From Basidiobolus meristosporus CBS 931.73 (lineage: Eukaryota > Fungi > Basidiobolomycota), in the NCBI GenBank assembly GCA_002104905.1, contig MCFE01000022.1:171240-235239 (forward strand): a stretch of 64,000 nt of DNA, given 5' to 3'. The position numbers and the translations under genes were made by a program. Positions 3,378-64,000 of this stretch are shown one piece after another. The stretch's first letter is position 1, and every line of letters starts with the position of its first letter. The notes below the pieces were generated by a model that saw only the letters and a program-made list of their open reading frames with translations, was not told the DNA's origin and did not search any database.

Positions 3378-4918
3378 ATGAAGGTCTTGGCAGCTCATTC
3401 CCTTTTTCTTTTATCTGCTATCTCTTCCGTCCTTGGCTCGTTTATTCCTAGAAGCTACAATGTGGCTGATCAACTCCAGAAGGGCTCAGATTATTCAGGA
3501 GGAGGCAATCATGGTAATGGTGGCGGTGGCAATGGCAATTATGAAGGAAACGGCGGTGGCAACGGCAACGGAGCAAGCAATTATGGCGATATCCACCACA
3601 ACTATGGTGGTAATGGTGGTGGCAATGGTCTCTATGGTAGCGGTGGTGGAAACGGTGATAGATATGGTGGCGGTGGTGGTGGTAATGGCGGCTACGGGGG
3701 CAATGGTGGCGGTCATGGCGACTATGGTGGTGGTAGCGGCAACGGTAATGGCGGAGTAAATGGATACAGCGGCGGTAACGGTGGTGGAGGCAGTGGCTAT
3801 GGTGGCAACGGTGGTGGAGGTAACGGCTATGGAGGTAACGGTGGTGGTGGCAGCGGCTATGGTGGCAACGGAGGTGGTGGTAACGGCTATGCAGTACGGT
3901 GGTGGTGGCAGCGGCTATGGTGGCAACGGTGGTGGTGGTAACGGCTACGAGTGGTGGTGGAGGCGGCAGCGGCTATGGTGGCAATGGTGGTGGCGGCAAC
4001 GGCTATGGTGGCAATGGTGGTGGCGGCAACGGCTATGGTGGCAATGGTGGTGGCGGCAACGGCTATGGTGGCAATGGTGGTGGTGGCAGCGGCTATGGTG
4101 GCAATGGTGGTGGCGGCAGCGGCTATGGTGGCAATGGTGGTGGTGGCAACGGCTATGGTGGCAATGGTGGTGGCGGTAACGGCTATGGCGGAGGACATGG
4201 AGAGAAATATGGTAACGGTGGCGGCGGCGGCGTCAAAGGATACGGCGGAGGACATGGTGGTGGCCACGGATACGGTGGAGGACATGGCGATGGTCACCTC
4301 AAGTCGTACGATAGCAATGACTATGGTGGTCGCGGACGCGGTCACCATGATGGCTATGCTGGAAAGAAGGACTACGGTCACGGCGACGGCGAAGACTATG
4401 GCCATAAGAAGCATAAGGGGTATGGTGGCGGTGGAGATGGAAACGACAAATATGACGACGACTACTCCGGTGGTGGTGGCCACCGCAAAGGCCACAAGAA
4501 GCACAAGAACAAGGACTATGATGGCGATGGTGATGACTATGATGAATACAGAGGGAAGCATGGCAAGGGGCGTGGCCATAAATATGATGATGACGGTGAT
4601 GACCACAAAGACTACCACAAGCACCGCACCAACGCTGATGAAGAAACTGTTAGCGTTGTTGCTGAGCAGCCAGCGACGGAACTCCCGGAACAGCCAGTTG
4701 CCGAAAACGTTAGTGAAGCAACCGATGCTGTCAACTCCCAAACCACCTCAAATACCGTTGAAGAGATTGCCCAACCGGCGACCAATGGCGATGAGTGCAA
4801 TCAAATAGAAATCAATGGCTCACTTGCCGGTACTCCCGCCCATGGTGCAGTCTGCCTCGGCCAGCAGGTTCAGAAAACCCTCAACAATGTCTTGGATGTG
4901 AAGGGGCTTTTAGGATAA
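3378..4918 (+). CDS. Secreted Gly/Tyr/Asn-repeat, His/Lys/Asp-rich protein; two apparent -2 frameshifts at about 3891 and 3950
   Basis: Signal-like N-terminus MKVLAAHSLFLLSAISSVLG. The GGNGGGGNGY frame passes through ORFs 3378, 3760 and 3899 at two corrupted repeat units (10 nt instead of 12 nt). C-terminal two-Cys domain shared with 5398-6252. Confidence 0.8.
3772..4190 (+). repeat. Coding 30-bp minisatellite, about 14 units encoding YGGNGGGG[N/S]G
   Basis: Consensus GGCTATGGTGGCAATGGTGGTGGCGGCAAC repeated in tandem. Confidence 0.9.
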
Positions 4919-56098: not shown

Positions 56099-57257
56099 AT
56101 GAAGTTTCTTCTAAATATCCTTGTAGTTACCTTGTCTATTTTCGGGGCACTCTCATTACCTACATCAGCGGGGGGAAAACAACTATCTAAAGAATCAATA
56201 AGCACCTTGTCCCGCCATGCTGTCTATGCAGATGCCGCTTACTGTCCTCGGCTCCTCGGAGAGGTGTGCAGTGCAAGGTACAGGAAAGAAGAAATGAGTT
56301 ACTTGTCAAAACAGCAATTGGGTTGGTTAGATGAGCTGAAAGTTATGCATCACTTTTACTTTAAGCCGGCAAAGCTTTACGCATATATTGGCTACTCCAA
56401 AAAGTACAAAGAAGTAGTTCTAGGCTTTAAAGGGTAGAGTGCACTTTACTCCCCAGCAATACTTCCAAGGTTGTTAATTTTATGCCCCATTTAGTACCTC
56501 GTTTACAAGCTTTAAAAGTGTGACGGTGAATGTTCGTCAGACTCTGGTAAAATACAAATATCCCGATCAAAAGAGCACAGGCAGCAGCAATTACATGGTG
56601 CATCAGGGATATTCTTCAGCCTTCTCCGGTCTTGCTAGGTCTACTCTGATTAAGCTGGAGCAACTAGCTAAGGCCAATATACCAGGGAGTGGCTACAAGT
56701 TGGTGATAGTTGGCCACTCGCAGGTAATTAACTGTATTCTTGTGTGCCGAGAGTATATGCTAACTGTATATTAGGGCGGTGCTGTAGCTAGTGTAGCTGC
56801 GATGGAAATCAAGAAAGCATATCAATTGCAAAAGCCTATTATCTCTAAGCTGCGTGCAAAAATACCAAGCTCCCATATTTTCCTCCACACGTTTGCCCAG
56901 CCTCGTATCGGAAACAAGGATTTTGCAAACCTAGTGCACAGTGTAATTGGAGTCAACAATGTAGCCAGAGTTACCAACTACTGGGACCTTGTTCCTAGCC
57001 TCCCTTCTTTGAAGGACTCCTATTTCCATCATCCAAATGAGATATTCATTACAGGTAAGCATAAGGTTGTGCGTTGCAAAGACGTGGCCAATGGCAAAGC
57101 CATTGAAGATGCATCATGCAGCGCAGCTGCTAGGGTATTGGCACTGTATATGTGCTCTGATTCTAATGCTGGTGTATGTTCTGAGGCTCTCCGTTCTCAG
57201 TTTGAGGAGCATAGACTCTCACAGTACGTCAAGTACCTAGGCGCAGCAGCTAACTGA
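56099..57257 (+). CDS. Secreted class-3 lipase, two introns
   Basis: Signal peptide; YADAAYC; VVLGFKG-T; spliced IVGHSQ-GGAVAS nucleophile elbow; TFAQPRIGN; RVTNYWDLVPSLP; YFHHPNE. Confidence 0.88.
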
Positions 57258-57884
57258 TCGGTTGCTTTTTCATCCACCTCAAATAAACAATTAAATGATA
57301 ATTAATTTAATCCAATGTCTCAAATATAGTCAGAATTAAGCTTCAAATTTATATTTGCGGAGTTGGTATTGTGATAAAAATTAGAAAAGGATAGAAAGGT
57401 GTTTATCAACAGAACCAGGTGACACAACCCATCATAGCAAAAATTAAAGGGTATCATACTCAAGTGCGCTGTTGTATGTCCCAAATCAAATCTGGATTAC
57501 AATGGCAAAGTGAGAGGAATACAATCACCTACAGGTAAGGCTTGTATTTTGAGCAAAACAAAGTAGCTAGTGATACTTGTTTAGCTTCTCTTCAAGAGTG
57601 TGGGGGTCAGAGGGGCTTTCATATAGACTAGAAAGAAGAAATGACAAGTTGTCATTGCTTAAGATATGTTTTTAAGGAAAAGGCAAAACTTACCTTTGCA
57701 AAAATGGTTTGTAATTATTTTTAATAAGGTAATTTTAATCATAGTCAGTATCTTCCATAAAGGGAGTATTATACATAATCTATTATTGTCAGAGGTCTAT
57801 CAAGCACTGCACAGAGAAAAGCTTTGGCTTCCATAACTTAAGTATTTGTGGTGAGTGTTGTGCATCAACATTTAAAACTTTGCC

Positions 57885-58550
57885 AATTTTACTCCGTTTG
57901 AAAATCTAGTACCCTAACTGATTTTCCCTAACCCAAACATAACAAATCCCAGTTACAGTTTATTTGATCCCACCTCAGAATCTATTTTTAGCTATCACAC
58001 CTGATCTATTTTCAAATGGTCATCACGTTATCAACCTATCTGCCAAGCCTTCCCAGGTGATTAGTCATCTGAGATCTATCCAACCACTGTGCAGTTGCCA
58101 AGACATCAGTTGATTGATGATGTAATTTTCATTTATCTTATGCACCTATGAACACCCAAATTGATTTCCATCAATCCAGTCTCTTGGCGCTTACTAATTC
58201 AACTTGATCAGAAAAGTATAAATAAAGTGTACTGAACCTTTTGGTTTAGTGTGTGTCTCAATGAAATTAAGATTCTGTCTCAGCAAAAATAAGAATCCAA
58301 CAATTCCGTTCTAGTTTCTATCCAAGCCTAGTATATCTAGCACTCCAAGGAACACCAAGCCTAGCCTGCCTAGTAAACAAATATCATTGCATTTATAGCC
58401 AACCCAGCTATATCCAAGACCAATATTAGATCAGAATCTTTCTGCTAATATTTCCGCCACTCTCTGACAATTCTAAGATTCTGCACTTAATTGTTCCTTT
58501 GGTTCAGTTAAACCATTCAAGAGTTTTATTACACTTTCTCTTGGATACAA
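57885..58550 (+). repeat. Subtelomeric repeat family, copy 3 (uninterrupted, retains CpGs)
   Basis: Aligns to 49095-49500 plus 49855-50090. Begins with ACCCTAACTGATTTTCCCTAACCC. Confidence 0.85.
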
Positions 58551-58592
58551 CATTTTTTTTGTTGAATTCCATTACATTCAGCCGATTAGAAG

Positions 58593-58817
58593 ATGTCCTC
58601 AGCAGCAAGCAATCCAAACCTTTCCATGTTGGAAGAAGCCAGAAGAAATCAGGAAGAACTTACTGAACAGCTTGAAAACATCATGCTTGAAAGAAATACC
58701 ATGATGATTGAGCACTCAAAGCTTGCCAAAACAAGATCTGATAATCACCGTAGAGATGAACTCCTTGAAGTTATATCCGGTTACCAAGATGAAATTGGAA
58801 TAATTAAGGAAGGTTAG
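58593..58817 (+). pseudogene. Coiled-coil-like ORF apparently truncated by telomere addition
   Basis: The open frame (EEARRNQEELTEQLENIMLE...) runs into GGTTAGGG. Its stop TAG (58815-58817) is part of the first TTAGGG. Confidence 0.5.
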
Positions 58818-58845
58818 GGTTAGGATAGGCTCAGGGTAGGGGGGG
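58811..58845 (+). repeat. Interstitial degenerate telomeric tract at the 3' junction of the proximal retroelement
   Basis: AGG TTAGGG TTAGG ATAGG CTCAGGG TAGGG GGGG. Confidence 0.9.
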
Positions 58846-58870
58846 AGACAGTCACCAACAGGTGAAATCT
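58846..58870 (-). promoter_or_regulatory. 3'-terminal stem-loop of retroelement copy A
   Basis: Element-sense AGATT-TCACC-TGTT-GGTGA-CTGTCT, preceded by AATAAA and followed by a C-run and CCCTAA-like repeats. Confidence 0.6.
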
Positions 58871-60797
58871 TTATTTCAGTTGAAACAAAGAAGCCAGTGC
58901 TACTGTTGTAGCTTTGATACAAGAGTGTGTAGCTGAGAGGAACTTGTAGGTAAGTTAATAAGAAGTGATGATAGTTCTTCAGTGCTCAAGACACTGTTCA
59001 GTGGGAAGGGGGGTAGCAAGAGAGGTAAGAATGACTTGTGAACAACATTAATGAGGGGAATGTGATAAGGATTGATATTCATCATAAAGGGAGTGTGCTG
59101 CTGCAGATATTGCTGCCAAAGGTCTGTCAAGTACTTCAGGTAGGCCAGCTTGGGTTTATCTGACTGCAGAATATAGTGAGCAAACTTCTTGACTTCAGGA
59201 TCTCCAAGTATAGTTCTCCAGCAGGAGTCAGGTGTTGTGTGGTGTGTTCTCTTCCAGGCCTTAATCAGTGGGTTGTTGCAGTTGTGAAGTCTGAGGTATA
59301 ATCTGGTTCTAAGGTAGAGAAGTCTGATCTTATAGGGCATAAACCCAAAAGCACCAAGAATAGCATGTCTGTAGGGGCATTCAGGCAAATGAGGCACCAA
59401 GGAGGTAATGCACCATACTGCAAACTTGTCAAGCTTAGTGCAGTCTCTAGAAGTAAGAGAGAGAAGTGGTAAGCCAAATTCCAGGACAGGGAAGACAAAC
59501 TGCTTGAGTAGAAGGAGGCAGCTGGGAGCTGAAGTTGTAGGAGGAGTAACAGCCAGTAGCTTGTGGAGTGCCTGTCTTGCCAGGATAATTCTCTTCTTCA
59601 GGTGTGCTCCAGAGTCTAGTCCAGTAGGAAGGAAAGGAAAGCCAAGATATGTAGCAGAAACCTGAGCAGGTAGAGTGGAGTTCTCCAAGTTGATGGGAGA
59701 GCCCAAAGGTACTGTCTTTGCAATGGAAAGCTGGAGATTGTTCTTCTGCAGATACTGGTGGATGGTCTGGGAGTCTTGTTGCACATTGGAGGAGGATATT
59801 CTGATGTCATCAGCAAAGAGAGTAACCAGGCAGTCAGCTGAGAGTCTTGGGAAATCATTCAGGAAGATGGCAAACAGTATAGGACCAAGCACAGAGCCTT
59901 GAACCACTCCATTAGGAACTGAGAACACAGCTGATTGCTCACTTGGATGCAGAATTCTTGCTTGTGGATCCAGAAACAGAGACCTGACAAGGAGGGTGAG
60001 AGAGGTACTGGAGAAGCATTGCAACTTGGACCAAAGCAGATTTCTGTCAACTGAATCAAAGGCCTTAGTAATATCAAACAGAACAGAGGGATACTTGCAC
60101 TGGAGAGAGTGATCTTGGCTAAGTATGACTGCATATTCCAAGGAGAGGCCAGGAACAAAGCCAAACTGTGCAGGATGAGACTTGAGGGAGTCAGAGTAGA
60201 GCTCCTGAGCAAGCAGAAGCTCAAACACCTTTCTGCAGGTGGGCAGCAGAGATATTGGCCTGTAGGAGCTAGGATCCAGGTGCTTTCCTTTACCCTTGTA
60301 CAGTGGCAGAACATTTGCAAAGGACCATTCCTCAGGAGTAGAAAGCTGGGCTGAGCATTGCTGAAACAGTGGAAGCAGAAGTGCAGACATGGCCTTGGTA
60401 CTAGTCTTCAGAAGCTCATAGGAGATTGTGTCCACACCTGGAGCAGTAGAGTTGGGAAGCCTCTTGAGCACATTATGGATTCTCCTTTGATCAAGTGCAA
60501 GTGGGATGGGCAGAGTCTTGAAGTCAGGATGAAAGCCAGGAGTTGAGTGCTGCTTTGTAGAGAAGAAGATGTTAGCCAGCTGTTCTGTTGAAGGTAACTT
60601 CCTGGAAGAGGGCCTCATTGCCCTGTAGAGTCTTGATACTGTTCTTGTTATAGAGTTGGAAGATTGCAGAGGCAAGGAACTCATAATATGATCCCAGAGC
60701 TGAGTATGCAGAGTGTGGTGAATTGCCTTGGAGTGGTGTATTGCTGTCAGGAGGAGTTTCTCTGTTTTTGGGTTAGGGAAACTCAGGTAGCTTTGTT
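58846..60797 (-). mobile_element. Non-LTR retrotransposon copy A, 5'-truncated (RT intact, endonuclease lost)
   Basis: ORF 58900-60797 carries APGVD, W..ANV.P.YK, YRPISLL, QFGF, FDITKAFDSVD, GVVQGSVLGP, LFADD and YLG. About 9 mismatches to copy B over ~1.95 kb by eye. Confidence 0.95.
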
Positions 60798-60811
60798 TAG
60801 GGTTAGGGGGG
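60797..60811 (+). repeat. (TTAGGG)2GGG spacer between the two retroelement copies
   Basis: CTTTG T TTAGGG TTAGGG GGG AGACAG. Confidence 0.95.
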
Positions 60812-60836
60812 AGACAGTCACCAACAGGTGAAATCT
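60812..60836 (-). promoter_or_regulatory. 3'-terminal stem-loop of retroelement copy B
   Basis: Identical to the copy A hairpin; AATAAA on the minus strand at 60836-60841. Confidence 0.6.
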
Positions 60837-63774
60837 TTATTTCAGTTGAAACAAAGAAGCCTGCGCTACTGTTGTAGCTTTGATACAAGAGTGTGTAGCT
60901 GAGGGGAATTTGTAGGTAAGTTAATAAGAAGTGATGATAGTTCTTCAGTGCTCAAGACACTGTTCAGTGGGAAGGGGGGTAGCAAGAGAGGTAAGAATGA
61001 CTTGTGAACAACATTAATGAGGGGAATGTGATAAGGATTGATATTCATCATAAAGGGAGTGTGCTGCTGCAGATATTGCTGCCAAAGGTCTGTCAAGTAC
61101 TTCAGGTAGGCCAGCTTGGGTTTATCTGACTGCAGAATATAGTGAGCAAACTTCTTGACTTCAGGATCTCCAAGTATAGTTCTCCAGCAGGAGTCAGGTG
61201 TTGTGTGGTGTGTTCTCTTCCAGGCCTTAATCAGTGGGTTGTTGCAGTTGTGAAGTCTGAGGTATAATCTGGTTCTAAGGTAGAGAAGTCTGATCTTATA
61301 GGGCATAAACCCAAAAGCACCAAGAATAGCATGTCTGTAGGGGCATTCAGGCAAATGAGGCACCAAGGAGGTAATGCACCATACTGCAAACTTGTCAAGC
61401 TTAGTGCAGTCTCTAGAAGTAAGAGAGAGAAGTGGTAAGCCAAATTCCAGGACAGGGAAGACAAACTGCTTGAGTAGAAGGAGGCAGCTGGGAGCTGAAG
61501 TTGTAGGAGGAGTAACAGCCAGTAGCTTGTGGAGTGCCTGTCTTGCCAGGATAATTCTCTTCTTCAGGTGTGCTCCAGAGTCTAGTCCAGTAGGAAGGAA
61601 AGGAAAGCCAAGATATGTAGCAGAAACCTGAGCAGGTAGAGTGGAGTTCTCCAAGTTGATGGGAGAGCCCAAAGGTACTGTCTTTGCAATGGAAAGCTGG
61701 AGATTGTTCTTCTGCAGTTACTGGTGGATGGTCTGGGAGTCTTGTTGCACATTGGAGGAGGATATTCTGATGTCATCAGCAAAGAGAGTAACCAGGCAGT
61801 CAGCTGAGAGTCTTGGGAAATCATTCAGGAAGATGGCAAACAGTATAGGACCAAGCACAGAGCCTTGAACCACTCCATTAGGAACTGAGAACACAGCTGA
61901 TTGCTCACTTGGATGCAGAATTCTTGCTTGTGGATCCAGAAACAGAGACCTGACAAGGAGGGTGAGAGAGGTACTGGAGAAGCATTGCAACTTGGACCAA
62001 AGCAGATTTCTGTCAACTGAATCAAAGGCCTTAGTAATATCAAACAGAACAGAGGGATACTTGCACTGGAGAGAGTGATCTTGGCTAAGTATGACTGCAT
62101 ATTCCAAGGAGAGGCCAGGAACAAAGCCAAACTGTGCAGGATGAAACTTGAGGGAGTCAGAGTAGAGCTCCTGAGCAAGCAGAAGCTCAAACACCTTTCT
62201 GCAGGTGGGTAGCAGAGATATTGGCCTGTAGGAGCTAGGATCCAGGTGCTTTCCTTTACCCTTGTACAGTGGCAGAACATTTGCAAAGGACCATTCCTCA
62301 GGAGTAGAAAGCTGGGCTGAGCATTGCTGAAACAGTGGAAGCAGAAGTGCAGACATGGCCTTGGTACTAGTCTTCAGAAGCTCATAGGAGATTGTGTCCA
62401 CACCTGGAGCAGTAGAGTTGGGAAGCCTCTTGAGCACATTATGGATTCTCCTTTGATCAAGTGCAAGTGGGATGGGCAGAGTCTTGAAGTCAGGATGAAA
62501 GCCAGGAGTTGAGTGCTGCTTTGTAGAGAAGAAGATGTTAGCCAGCTGTTCTGTTGAAGGTAACTTCCTGGAAGAGGGCCACATTGCCCTGTAGAGTCTT
62601 GATACTGTTCTTGTTATAGAGTTGGAAGATTGCAGAGGCAAGGAACTCATAATATGATCCCAGAGCTGAGTATGCAGAGTGTGGTGAATTGCCTTGGAGT
62701 GGTGTATTGCTGTCAGGAGGAGTTTCTCTGTTTTTGGGTTAGGGAAGCTCAGGTAGCTTTGTTGCAGGGCTGAAACAATGGATTCCCATTTTCTTGAGGT
62801 AACAGCAGTAGTCTTGCATGGCAGTGAGAGGGAGTCAGACACCAGAATCAGATGCTTCACAAAGAGCCAGGCAAAGTTGAGACCATCTGGCAGAGAAAGT
62901 AGCAAACTGGCAAGCTTCAAGTAGTTCCCAAAGTCTTTCTTCTGATTCTTGGTAGCTTTGTGGGTGAGCACAGTAAGTTTTGGCAGCTTCTTCTTCACAG
63001 CTGGTTGCATAGAAAGGGACCAGGCTGGGTGGTCAGAGGCTCTCAAGGATCCTAGCTCAGCTCCAGAGAATTGCTTAACTTCATTCACAAAGTAGAGGGC
63101 AGCAGCAGAAGGGCAGATCCAGTCAACACATCTTTTCTCAGATTGAGCACCTAGTGCTAGCAGGTGGCTTTCTCTCAGGAAGTTCAGTAGGAATGTAGAC
63201 CTTGGCTTCATTCTTGCAGTCAGAGTAGTCTTGTTCTCAGGATGGGGAATGTTGAGATCTCCAAGCAAGATAACAGGTGTTGATATAGATTGTTGGTATT
63301 GCTGAACCTTCTGGCATATAACTTGCACTTCCTGAAGGGCTAGACTTGGAGGCAGATAGCAGAGCACCAGACTGATAGTTGGCAACTGGAGAGCAGCACA
63401 GTAAGGGGAGTAAAGAGGAACACAGAGCTGAGGAGTATTGATGGTAGAAGAGATGAAGCAGATAGAGGAGGTATTCTTTGTTCTAGGAGTAGAAAAGCAA
63501 TATAGATTAGTCAAAAGTATAGAGGGTAGCTGGACATCAATCAAACACAGGAGGGAAAATCTTGAAAGAAGTCTCTCTAGAGTTGGTCTTGATGGCTGTA
63601 TGCTGTTGCAGTTAAGCAACAGAACTTCAGGTAGTCAGGCAGAGGTTGTAGCTTCTTCAGAGGCAGCATTAACAATGTGACCTGCAGAGTCCCAGAGCTC
63701 TTCAAATGGTGCATCACTTAAGTCAGCAAGGAGGGAAATGGCATGGTTCTTGAGGAAGTATGCCACATCATAGG
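60812..63774 (-). mobile_element. Non-LTR retrotransposon copy B (APE endonuclease plus RT), 5' end joined directly to the telomere
   Basis: APE motifs LLNCNS, CYLPP, ILLGDLN, VDWI and SDH, followed by the full RT motif set. One TAA at 61718-61720 (TAT in copy A) splits an otherwise ~920-codon ORF2 (60866-63634). Confidence 0.95.
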
Positions 63775-64000
63775 AGGGTTAGGGTTAGGGTTAGGGTTAG
63801 GGTTAGGGTTAGGGTTAGGGTTAGGGTTAGGGTTAGGGTTAGGGTTAGGGTTAGGGTTAGGGTTAGGGTTAGGGTTAGGGTTAGGGTTAGGGTTAGGGTT
63901 AGGGTTAGGGTTAGGGTTAGGGTTAGGGTTAGGGTTAGGGTTAGGGTTAGGGTTAGGGTTAGGGTTAGGGTTAGGGTTAGGGTTAGGTTAGGGTTAGGGT
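63775..64000 (+). repeat. Telomere (TTAGGG)n, about 37 units, chromosome end
   Basis: Perfect TTAGGG array to the window end with one TTAGG variant; the G-rich strand runs toward the end. Confidence 0.99.

Follow-up and report, generated by a model that had tools for sequence, protein, structure and literature searches.

Organization of the contig tip

The window, that is, the whole 64,000-nt stretch of Basidiobolus meristosporus DNA that was analyzed, includes a GluRS gene. Its tip consists of telomeric sequence and copies of a non-LTR element (LINE), no copy of which was found in the first 57 kb. The innermost component is an older and diverged LINE remnant (57521..57845, minus strand), recognized by blastn, in which two collinear segments align at 71% identity with nt 18-99 and 253-308 of copy 2, and by a tblastn match of 57845-57576 to amino acids 833-922 of ORF2 (38% identity, E 1e-4), and lying in the same orientation as copies 1 and 2. 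It is followed by the 5' part of an unclassified high-copy repeat, here called X (57856..58810, plus strand), which begins with TGTTG and contains an ORF from 58593. Repeat X is interrupted at 58810 and joined there to telomeric sequence, a degenerate telomere-like tract as read from its letters (58811..58845, plus strand), the final G-run of which adjoins the 3' end of LINE copy 1. At 35 nt, this innermost tract is longer than the one or two units usual at such junctions. At least 40 copies of X, at 96-99% identity, are present among 927 candidates; other copies continue beyond the break point seen at 58810, and at two further loci (L014 and L071) X is likewise interrupted and followed by telomere units and this LINE. 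A Pfam search with 120 amino acids of X returned no match.

Copy 1 (58846..60796, minus strand) comprises nt 1-1955 of the 4561-nt element, is 5'-truncated inside ORF2 and is 99.3% identical to the full-length reference copy. What it retains of ORF2 is the reverse transcriptase (RT) and the C-terminal region, with the stop codon at 58900-58902. Between its truncated 5' end and the 3' end of copy 2 lies an exact TTAGGGTTAGGG, (TTAGGG)2 (60797..60808, plus strand), in keeping with the genome-wide junction pattern of one to two units. Copy 2 (60809..63774, minus strand) extends over nt 1 to ~2970 of the 4561 and is truncated in the last 47 codons of ORF1. It carries a single in-frame TGA, noted on reading the sequence, at the ORF1/ORF2 boundary (63635..63637, minus strand), a predicted APE-type endonuclease domain (62930..63634, minus strand; ORF2 amino acids ~1-235), assigned by fold and motifs, and an RT domain of the RVT_1 family (61601..62239, minus strand; amino acids 466-678). 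The ORF2 of copy 2 is full length except for one nonsense codon, an in-frame TAA (61718..61720, minus strand), where the equivalent site of copy 1 reads TAT (A at 59752 in copy 1 versus T at 61718 in copy 2). The 3' UTR module of copy 1 (58846..58899, minus strand), composed of hairpin 1, hairpin 2 and a pyrimidine tail with a terminal C-run, recurs in copy 2 (60809-60865, minus strand), and its motif is present only twice in the 64 kb of the window, where 0 occurrences are expected. The contig tip is a terminal telomere array of (TTAGGG)37.8 (63775..64000, plus strand; 226 nt), which shares a 4-nt overlap (AGGG) with copy 2. Matches to (TTAGGG)2 with at most one mismatch number 40 in the window, versus 0.23 expected by chance.

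The two copies are arranged head-to-tail and antisense on the plus strand, so oriented that their 3' ends are proximal and their 5' ends distal, and their alignment over 1951 nt contains 9 mismatches (99.54% identity). The sequence-only reading of this locus, which described two ~99.5% identical copies with telomeric sequence at three junctions, is upheld in its coordinates; its placing of the stack in the last 5 kb is right for the copies and too narrow for the stack, since the start of X and the LINE remnant lie inside 58811 and the layered end thus begins near 57.5 kb. The copies are flanked by telomeric repeats, so that target-site duplication is not assessable there. Both are now dead, being truncated and, in the case of copy 2, also interrupted by the nonsense codon. 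An age gradient from copy 1 to copy 2 was considered and rejected, each being ~0.5% from the family majority.

Structure of the complete element

The full element measures ~4.56 kb (4561 nt) and opens with a 5' UTR of one to three tandem units of ~99 nt. ORF1, one in-frame TGA (in the context TGA-CTA-C) and ORF2 follow in the same frame in full-length copies. ORF1 exhibits a Cys-rich N-terminus, a coiled coil and an RRM-like C-terminus, a beta-alpha-beta domain whose RRM matches in the fold search are weak (E 0.06). No Pfam family scored above cutoff for ORF1, an atlas search related it to unnamed clusters of Mucoromycota and Zoopagomycota, and a CCHC knuckle, which was looked for, is absent from it. 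The element ends in two hairpins, a C-run and one or two CCCTAA units, and poly(A) was found at none of 82 distinct 3' junctions. Hairpin 1 contains AATAAA and hairpin 2 has the form TCACC-loop-GGTGA; in a consensus of the two hairpins built from 13 tails of different families, 5 of 13 pairs display compensatory changes. Among the 19 longer loci, ORF2 (922 codons) is intact in 18 and full-length ORF1 (523 codons) in eight. Family copies differ from the majority base at a median of 15 positions in 2966 nt (~0.5%).

Reverse transcriptase, endonuclease and class

The RT of ORF2 belongs to RVT_1 (E 2.6e-25; 89.8 bits, the cutoff being 29.6) and bears a FADD motif. Among solved structures the nearest is that of human L1 ORF2p (E 6e-13), few clades having solved structures, and past five close relatives homologues share ~30% identity, over the RT only. 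The endonuclease region matches Pfam Exo_endo_phos_2 with an E-value of 3e-4, under the curated cutoff. An AF2 model of this domain, the alignment for which included 15 canonical LINE APEs, adopts an APE fold (pLDDT 87.6, pTM 0.82), and a Foldseek search with the model retrieves the TRAS1 EN (top, E 1e-10), APE1 and the L1 EN, at E 1e-10 to 1e-8. Of the APE motifs, N-C-N-S, GDLN, D171 and SDH remain in place, and relatives of 43-55% identity share both the fold and the motifs. The metal-binding Glu of the L-x-E-T motif is replaced by Asp ('CLIDV') in every family member, which makes endonuclease activity uncertain. A sequence search of the PDB with the APE region alone gave no match, and a family-only APE profile found nothing significant there (best E 2.1); the APE assignment is therefore based on fold and motifs. 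The element is best described as an APE-type LINE with a highly divergent APE and putative endonuclease activity, and the absence of LTRs (no long terminal or inverted repeats were found), the constant 3' end and the variable 5' truncation are those of a LINE.

Several narrower placements were considered. The scores of a mixed APE profile (L1 EN 1e-24, ahead of TRAS1 EN at 1.6e-16) mainly reflect its 15 non-family rows and were set aside for the placement of the clade. The R1 clade (TRAS/SART) does not fit an ORF1 devoid of a CCHC knuckle or junctions devoid of poly(A). Membership in the CRE-like group (MoTeR, FoTeR and Cnl1) is contradicted by the two ORFs, the N-terminal APE and the ORF2 C-terminus, where no Cys-His or CCHC-type motif was found downstream of the RT, and membership in Athena/Coprina by the LINE-type RT and the presence of an APE, although the reverse-complement telomeric 3' repeats do match. 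Of the L1/Tx1 features, the coiled coil of ORF1 is present and the nearest solved RT is that of L1 ORF2p, the RRM match is the weak one given above, and no C-terminal CCHC-type motif was found in ORF2.

Distribution in the genome and in other samples

Copies of the element are nearly restricted to chromosome ends and share a single orientation with respect to the G-strand. Of 48 contigs, sampled in list order and with copies located by 60-75-nt probes, 46 have the 3' end of their outermost copy at 0.2-10.7 kb from the end it faces. All contigs of 160-345 kb fit this end position, the listed inner copies reaching up to 18 kb inward (C1) and pointing in one direction. Left contig ends carry reverse copies, and one contig (C291) has mirrored arrays at both ends; in two contigs of ~19 kb (C45 and C27) the sampled copies are mid-contig. 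At many contig ends the outermost elements are capped by perfect TTAGGG arrays of 150-226 nt. The genome contains 611 instances of the 35-nt 3' end (575 forward and 36 reverse), and telomeric contig ends number 5967 on the right versus 62 on the left, a right-end bias which, together with the many telomeric contigs of 12-20 kb, means that the counts may include redundant contigs.

Related families, at 59-80% amino-acid identity, are present in eight contigs from other public samples. The hairpins, the C-run and TAACCC(TAA) recur at the 3' terminus of all eight, several of which continue into further elements; the contigs of two metagenomic relatives (L039 and L040) stop before the tail. The broader claims of the sequence-only reading are borne out by these surveys and by the domain searches: an APE-type LINE, its telomere association and polarity at other contig ends, its coexistence with telomerase-type repeats, and its recent activity, to which the ~0.5% divergence from the family majority and the many copies with both ORFs open attest.

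Junctions and truncations

The element is immediately preceded by a (T)TAGGG unit in ~78 of the 82 distinct flanks upstream of it. The proximal tract at these 3' junctions has a median length of 12 nt, including a G-run of 3 to 11, and amounts to one or two units in ~95% of the 82. For the greater part of its length, each short junction tract acts like a tail belonging to the element and not like residual telomere. At the opposite side, the full-length 5' ends (n=10) all stop at the identical base, and the truncated ones (n=33) are all at different positions, with a telomere unit immediately after in nearly all and a microhomology of 0-4 nt. On its distal side every copy borders either another element or telomere, and in no case does the proximal flanking sequence resume there.

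Proposed mechanism and alternatives

The element is most likely a telomere-specialized LINE that is serially copied onto chromosome ends from the 3'-OH of the G-strand and then capped by telomerase, and the fungus seems to lengthen its ends by LINE addition as well as by telomerase. The CCCUAA/C-run tail with which we infer the element RNA to end would pair with the G-rich DNA 3'-OH at the chromosome end, whereby the RT, recognizing the hairpins, would copy the RNA outward. Outward copying would leave the element's 3' end facing the centromere and its 5' end facing the tip, and an early stop of synthesis or erosion of the new end would give rise to the variable 5' truncations. The new end would then either be capped by telomerase or become the primer for the next element. 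In the window, events would have begun with a break in X and the addition of a short telomeric tract; copy 1 would have followed, then two telomere units, then copy 2 and finally the 226-nt telomere. As to the primer itself, a nearly bare end appears somewhat probable, and a nick made by the APE at the telomere base is a weaker candidate.

Priming on a free end needs no conserved endonuclease, which counts against this account. An APE is nevertheless present, its active-site motifs are conserved across families of 43-55% identity and its best structural match is the TRAS1 endonuclease; the element moreover has the orientation that TRAS1 has in the telomere and adjoins TTAGGG on both sides. These features would suit a mode of insertion of the TRAS/SART type, in which the APE nicks the G-strand inside the TTAGGG duplex, reverse transcription is target-primed and the junction repeats are target DNA. 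Such a mode is unlikely here. Random nicks in arrays of 150-226 nt predict tracts of up to ~200 nt, against the one or two units found, and the same short tract also follows upstream DNA consisting of unique sequence or of an interrupted repeat. In addition, the lead of TRAS1 EN over APE1 and L1 EN is marginal, with a TM of ~0.6 for all.

Sequence exchange is common among subtelomeres, the assembly holds many short telomeric contigs and a strong strand bias, and ~5 variants that depart from the family majority are common to copies 1 and 2. In place of serial retrotransposition, the arrays might therefore be ascribed to subtelomeric blocks recombining, or being copied from breaks, between chromosome ends, or else to collapse or duplication of a few true copies in the assembly. 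This is a very improbable account of 82 upstream flanks and 33 truncation points, each connected precisely, through a telomere unit, with one and the same 3' nucleotide, and of window copies which have nine differing sites and different truncation points. The read data, which were searched with the tip as far as 63790, comprise ~100-nt DNA unitigs of the source sample together with two short contigs of a second study; no RNA run containing the sequence was found, none of these unitigs and contigs spans the two-copy array of the window, and the source-sample unitigs contain many joints in which variable internal positions pass into a telomere unit plus tail, so that the joint variety of the assembly is reproduced. 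The same architecture also recurs in unrelated public samples. An ordinary dispersed LINE with a CCCTAA-like tail, surviving best in gene-poor subtelomeres, is barely credible: some LINE clades do have short simple-repeat ends instead of poly(A), and the junction units do behave as part of the element, but each listed copy in the 160-345 kb contigs lies in the last ~18 kb and in one direction, the other 57 kb of the window are without copies, and the distal flanks never resume the proximal ones.

Serial copying onto chromosome ends could be taken further, to the possible though doubtful proposal that LINE addition regularly serves B. meristosporus as a second means of maintaining ends and healing breaks, and is not an occasional parasite. 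The RNA would bring its own one or two telomere units and prime on nearly bare or freshly broken ends, including those inside genes and repeats; the LINE would seed a new functional end, which telomerase would then cap. Together with non-coding passengers sharing the 3' hairpins, this would amount to LINE-based telomere building beside telomerase at several hundred ends. If true, LINE addition may have helped to stabilize the unusually fragmented chromosome set of this fungus.

Comparison with known telomeric retroelements

Telomeres built by retroelements are best known from the telomerase-less Drosophila, other cases being TRAS/SART, the rotifer Athena elements and the REL-type, MoTeR-like elements of ascomycetes. 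TART and TAHRE retain an APE domain despite targeting ends. TRAS/SART elements have poly(A) ends and a gag-like ORF1 with CCHC knuckles, and are located within long TTAGG tracts. In Zepp, which also ends in poly(A), telomere repeats are added onto a 5'-truncated copy whose 3' end points inward.

A literature search found no paper on the present element system. The known fungal telomeric non-LTR elements, MoTeR, FoTeR and Cnl1, are of the REL-endonuclease type (PMC12857005). They resemble the Basidiobolus element in their fungal hosts, TTAGGG telomeres, fixed orientation and variable 5' tandem repeats (PMC12857005, PMC7367193), yet they have one ORF with a C-terminal restriction-enzyme-like endonuclease and a CCHC motif and are grouped with CRE/SLACS (PMC12857005), whereas the Basidiobolus element has two ORFs and an N-terminal APE. 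TRAS1 and SART1, R1-clade elements of Bombyx and other insects, are listed as telomeric (PMC10088271, PMC7265360) and share with it an APE and RT, specificity for the telomeric repeat, oriented arrays beside a telomerase-type repeat and a 3' UTR structure recognized by the RT. The Basidiobolus element differs from them by its lack of poly(A) and of a CCHC knuckle, by the one or two repeat units between elements and by its fungal host. APE-type telomere specialists, for which the sequence-only reading named the insect elements TRAS/SART, are not confined to insects, since Zepp1 of Chlorella and Tx1-1_ACar of the anole are listed as L1-like LINEs tied to telomeric repeats (PMC10088271); neither is fungal.

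HeT-A, TART and TAHRE likewise form terminal head-to-tail arrays by end addition, in which the 3' ends point to the centromere and the 5' truncation varies (PMC5537684). Theirs are poly(A) elements of a host without telomerase, whereas here TTAGGG arrays cap the stack and the tail is a telomeric repeat. In the apparent working of the system, the closest match is Athena/Coprina, which attach to G-rich overhangs via reverse-complement telomeric 3' repeats and are confined to termini (PMC8557442). These are Penelope-like elements of rotifers, fungi and other hosts, which lack an endonuclease and combine a telomerase-like PLE RT with hammerhead ribozyme motifs, in contrast to the LINE-type RT, N-terminal APE and two ORFs described here.

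The host is an early-diverging, culturable fungus that carries the element on very many ends. A single organism allows tests of how the RNA of a retroelement finds the chromosome end, why end-targeting elements retain an endonuclease, and how telomerase and retrotransposition divide the capping of ends, including the healing of broken chromosomes. The element unites traits of separate systems, being a two-ORF APE LINE with a reverse-complement telomeric tail and canonical TTAGGG arrays, and such a tail in place of poly(A) is otherwise described for endonuclease-less Penelope-like elements.

The LINE array at the contig tip

The window forms the final 64 kb of a contig of 235,239 nt from Basidiobolus meristosporus, an early-diverging fungus (Zoopagomycota); a GluRS gene within it matches the CBS 931.73 protein of this species at 100% identity. 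The tip of the window alternates LINE copies with telomeric sequence. Read outward after position 58810, a degenerate telomere-like tract of 35 nt (58811-58845) is followed by copy 1 of the element (58846-60796, minus strand), by two telomere units in the form of an exact TTAGGGTTAGGG (60797-60808), by copy 2 (60809-63774, minus strand) and by the terminal telomere, (TTAGGG)37.8, which runs from 63775 to the contig end. With one mismatch at most, (TTAGGG)2 is matched 40 times in the window, against 0.23 expected. The copies are direct repeats of 99.54% identity (9 mismatches in 1951 nt); the coding sense of both is the minus strand, such that their 3' ends face the centromere and their 5' ends the tip. 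Once the tracts and copies had been re-read and the copies aligned, the coordinates, identity and polarity that the sequence-only reading had given for a telomere-targeted array of APE-type LINEs proved to be correct. Copy 1 ends at nt 1955 of the element and copy 2 at about nt 2970, copy 2 contains an in-frame TAA (61718-61720, minus strand), and both are non-functional.

Inward of the stack, the nearest host gene ends near 57257. Between this gene and the degenerate tract lie a diverged LINE remnant (57521-57845), oriented as copies 1 and 2, and the start of an abundant, unclassified repeat, here termed repeat X (57856-58810, plus strand), which is cut off at 58810; other copies of it extend beyond the equivalent breakpoint. 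The remnant, the cut-off repeat and the stacked copies therefore indicate that this end was broken or eroded, and then rebuilt, more than once.

Repeat X has 40 or more copies that are 96-99% identical, drawn from 927 candidates. It begins with TGTTG, and its plus strand contains a long sense ORF; a Pfam search with 120 aa from it gave no match. As at 57856-58810 of the window, it is found inside LINE stacks at other loci (L101-L108, L014 and L071), mostly in the same direction as the stack (34:6). Its left end adjoins 5'-truncated LINEs with no telomere unit between them, and at three places it is truncated and followed by telomere units and a LINE.

Genomic distribution and age of the family

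Among 48 contigs, taken in listing order and probed for their lengths, the 3' end of the outermost copy is 0.2-10.7 kb away from the contig end that it faces in 46. These include every contig of 160-345 kb, in which inner copies lie at most 18 kb in (contig C1). Reverse-strand copies are located at left contig ends, and contig C291 (160,813 nt) bears mirrored LINE arrays at both of its ends (2134, minus strand; 156626, plus strand); at about 161 kb, this contig may represent a whole chromosome. Many LINE-bearing contigs terminate in 150-226 nt of perfect TTAGGG repeats, and the first 57 kb of the window contain neither the tail motif nor any sequence homologous to the element. The polarity and terminal placement read from a single array are shared by most of the copies mapped genome-wide.

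The family is young: its copies depart from the majority base at a median of 15 positions in 2966 nt and both ORFs are open in many of them, in line with the recent activity that had been proposed. In the whole assembly, (TTAGGG)8 occurs 5967 times on the forward strand versus 62 on the reverse; for the LINE tail, the counts are 575 and 36. It follows that almost all telomeric contig ends are right ends, a bias that is probably a convention of the assembler. Since, in addition, a length of only 12-20 kb is common among telomeric contigs, copy counts, including the 611 genomic occurrences of the 35-nt 3' end of the element, are possibly inflated by redundant contigs. About 200-300 telomeric arrays are implied in the 89-Mb assembly.

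Structure and predicted proteins of the element

Thirty further genomic copies are each at least 99% identical and, taken together with additional flanking sequence, define the full-length form of 4561 nt. The 5' UTR has one fixed start base, one to three tandem units of ~99 nt and an internal CCCTAACCCTAA on the sense strand. Each unit terminates at the base where full-length copies end (L031:1439-1595, L032, L035 and L037), which suggests, by analogy with the monomers of mouse L1, that the unit may be a promoter.

ORF1 codes for a protein of 502 aa that is Cys-rich at its N-terminus, contains a coiled coil and has, at its C-terminus, a beta-alpha-beta domain whose RRM matches are weak; no CCHC knuckle was found in it. 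ORF2 comprises 922 codons and is followed by a 3' UTR of about 55 nt. The two ORFs share a frame and are separated by a single in-frame TGA (63635-63637 in the window; 4327-4329 in locus L009) in the context TGA-CTA-C, ORF2 runs for 140 codons without an ATG, and in L039, a related family, an ATG follows the ORF1 stop by one codon. This arrangement suggests that ORF2 may be translated via stop-codon readthrough or reinitiation.

The reverse transcriptase of ORF2 matches RVT_1 (E 2.6e-25), and the nearest solved enzyme is human L1 ORF2p (E 6e-13). The N-terminal ~235 residues are very divergent: the Pfam APE models remain below their cutoffs, and PDB sequence searches with this region found nothing. 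Its AlphaFold model has an APE fold (pLDDT 87.6), with TRAS1 EN, APE1 and L1 EN as fold matches (E 1e-10 to 1e-8). The endonuclease motifs N, GDxN, D and SDH are invariant among relatives of 43-55% identity, in all of which the metal-binding Glu is replaced by Asp. The modeled fold, from an alignment that included canonical LINE APEs, and the kept motifs support the assignment of the element to the APE type, with a putative endonuclease.

A conserved 3' module

Every type of tail in the stacks folds alike, with two hairpins, a pyrimidine tail and a C-run; hairpin 1 contains AAUAAA, and hairpin 2 is TCACC-loop-GGUGA. Related LINE families, of 59-80% amino-acid identity, are present on eight contigs of other public samples (L109-L116; Logan and ENA). 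All eight have the hairpins, the C-run and TAACCC(TAA) after the ORF2 stop, and several run into further elements. An alignment of 13 sequences yields the two-hairpin structure as its consensus, and 5 of its 13 pairs show compensatory changes. The recurrence of the module in other samples, together with these changes, argues from comparative sequence data that the telomeric tail is an ancient trait conserved in the lineage, independent of this assembly.

A run from another study (X5) contains two short pieces, 95-99% similar. Non-coding passengers with the 3' hairpins and telomere tail of the LINE are interleaved with LINEs elsewhere (L031 from 1597, L016, L037 and others), the commonest having a tRNA-like far end; the window contains none.

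Junctions and the proposed building of chromosome ends

Of all the evidence, the junctions tell the most. A (T)TAGGG unit lies directly upstream of the element's G-run in about 78 of 82 distinct flanks. The tract on the 3' side has a median of 12 nt, G-run included, with only 2-4 tracts reaching 30 nt, and its shortness does not depend on the upstream DNA, be it unique sequence, a truncated repeat or a further element. Truncated 5' ends fall at 33 different positions in 33 copies, nearly all adjoining a telomere unit at once, with an overlap of 0-4 nt (mean about 1.8); full-length 5' ends share the same base (10/10 copies). Many such joints are reproduced in short-read unitigs from the source sample. 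At the 3' boundary, the length of the G-run ranges between 3 and 11 G, with 6-7 the most frequent (82 junctions; 58839-58846 and 60803-60808 in the window), the pattern that would be expected if cDNA synthesis slips as it begins on the C-run.

The constant 3' end, variable 5' ends, single orientation and terminal position are together the signature of serial addition of the element onto chromosome ends. Were the endonuclease to cut at random inside the telomere, the internal units would be leftover target repeat, which they do not look like, the internal tracts being only one or two units long versus terminal arrays of ~200 nt. Given this difference in length, the internal units look instead as though the RNA tail of the element itself had served as their template, on ends already stripped of nearly all telomere. 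By inference, priming on a free end is somewhat more likely than priming at a nick that the APE would make at the telomere base.

Comparison with known telomeric elements

A literature search for telomeric LINEs in Basidiobolus found no paper. In its apparent way of working, the element is closest to Athena/Coprina, endonuclease-less Penelope-like elements which attach to G-overhangs via reverse-complement telomeric repeats (PMC8557442), and it is also similar to the HeT-A/TART stacks of Drosophila (PMC5537684). Its protein content is that of a LINE with a predicted APE, as in TRAS/SART, Zepp1 and Tx1-1_ACar (PMC10088271). The known fungal telomeric non-LTR elements are, as in the sequence-only reading, of the restriction-enzyme-like endonuclease type: MoTeR, FoTeR and Cnl1 carry such an enzyme and group with CRE (PMC12857005), a class to which the Basidiobolus element does not belong.
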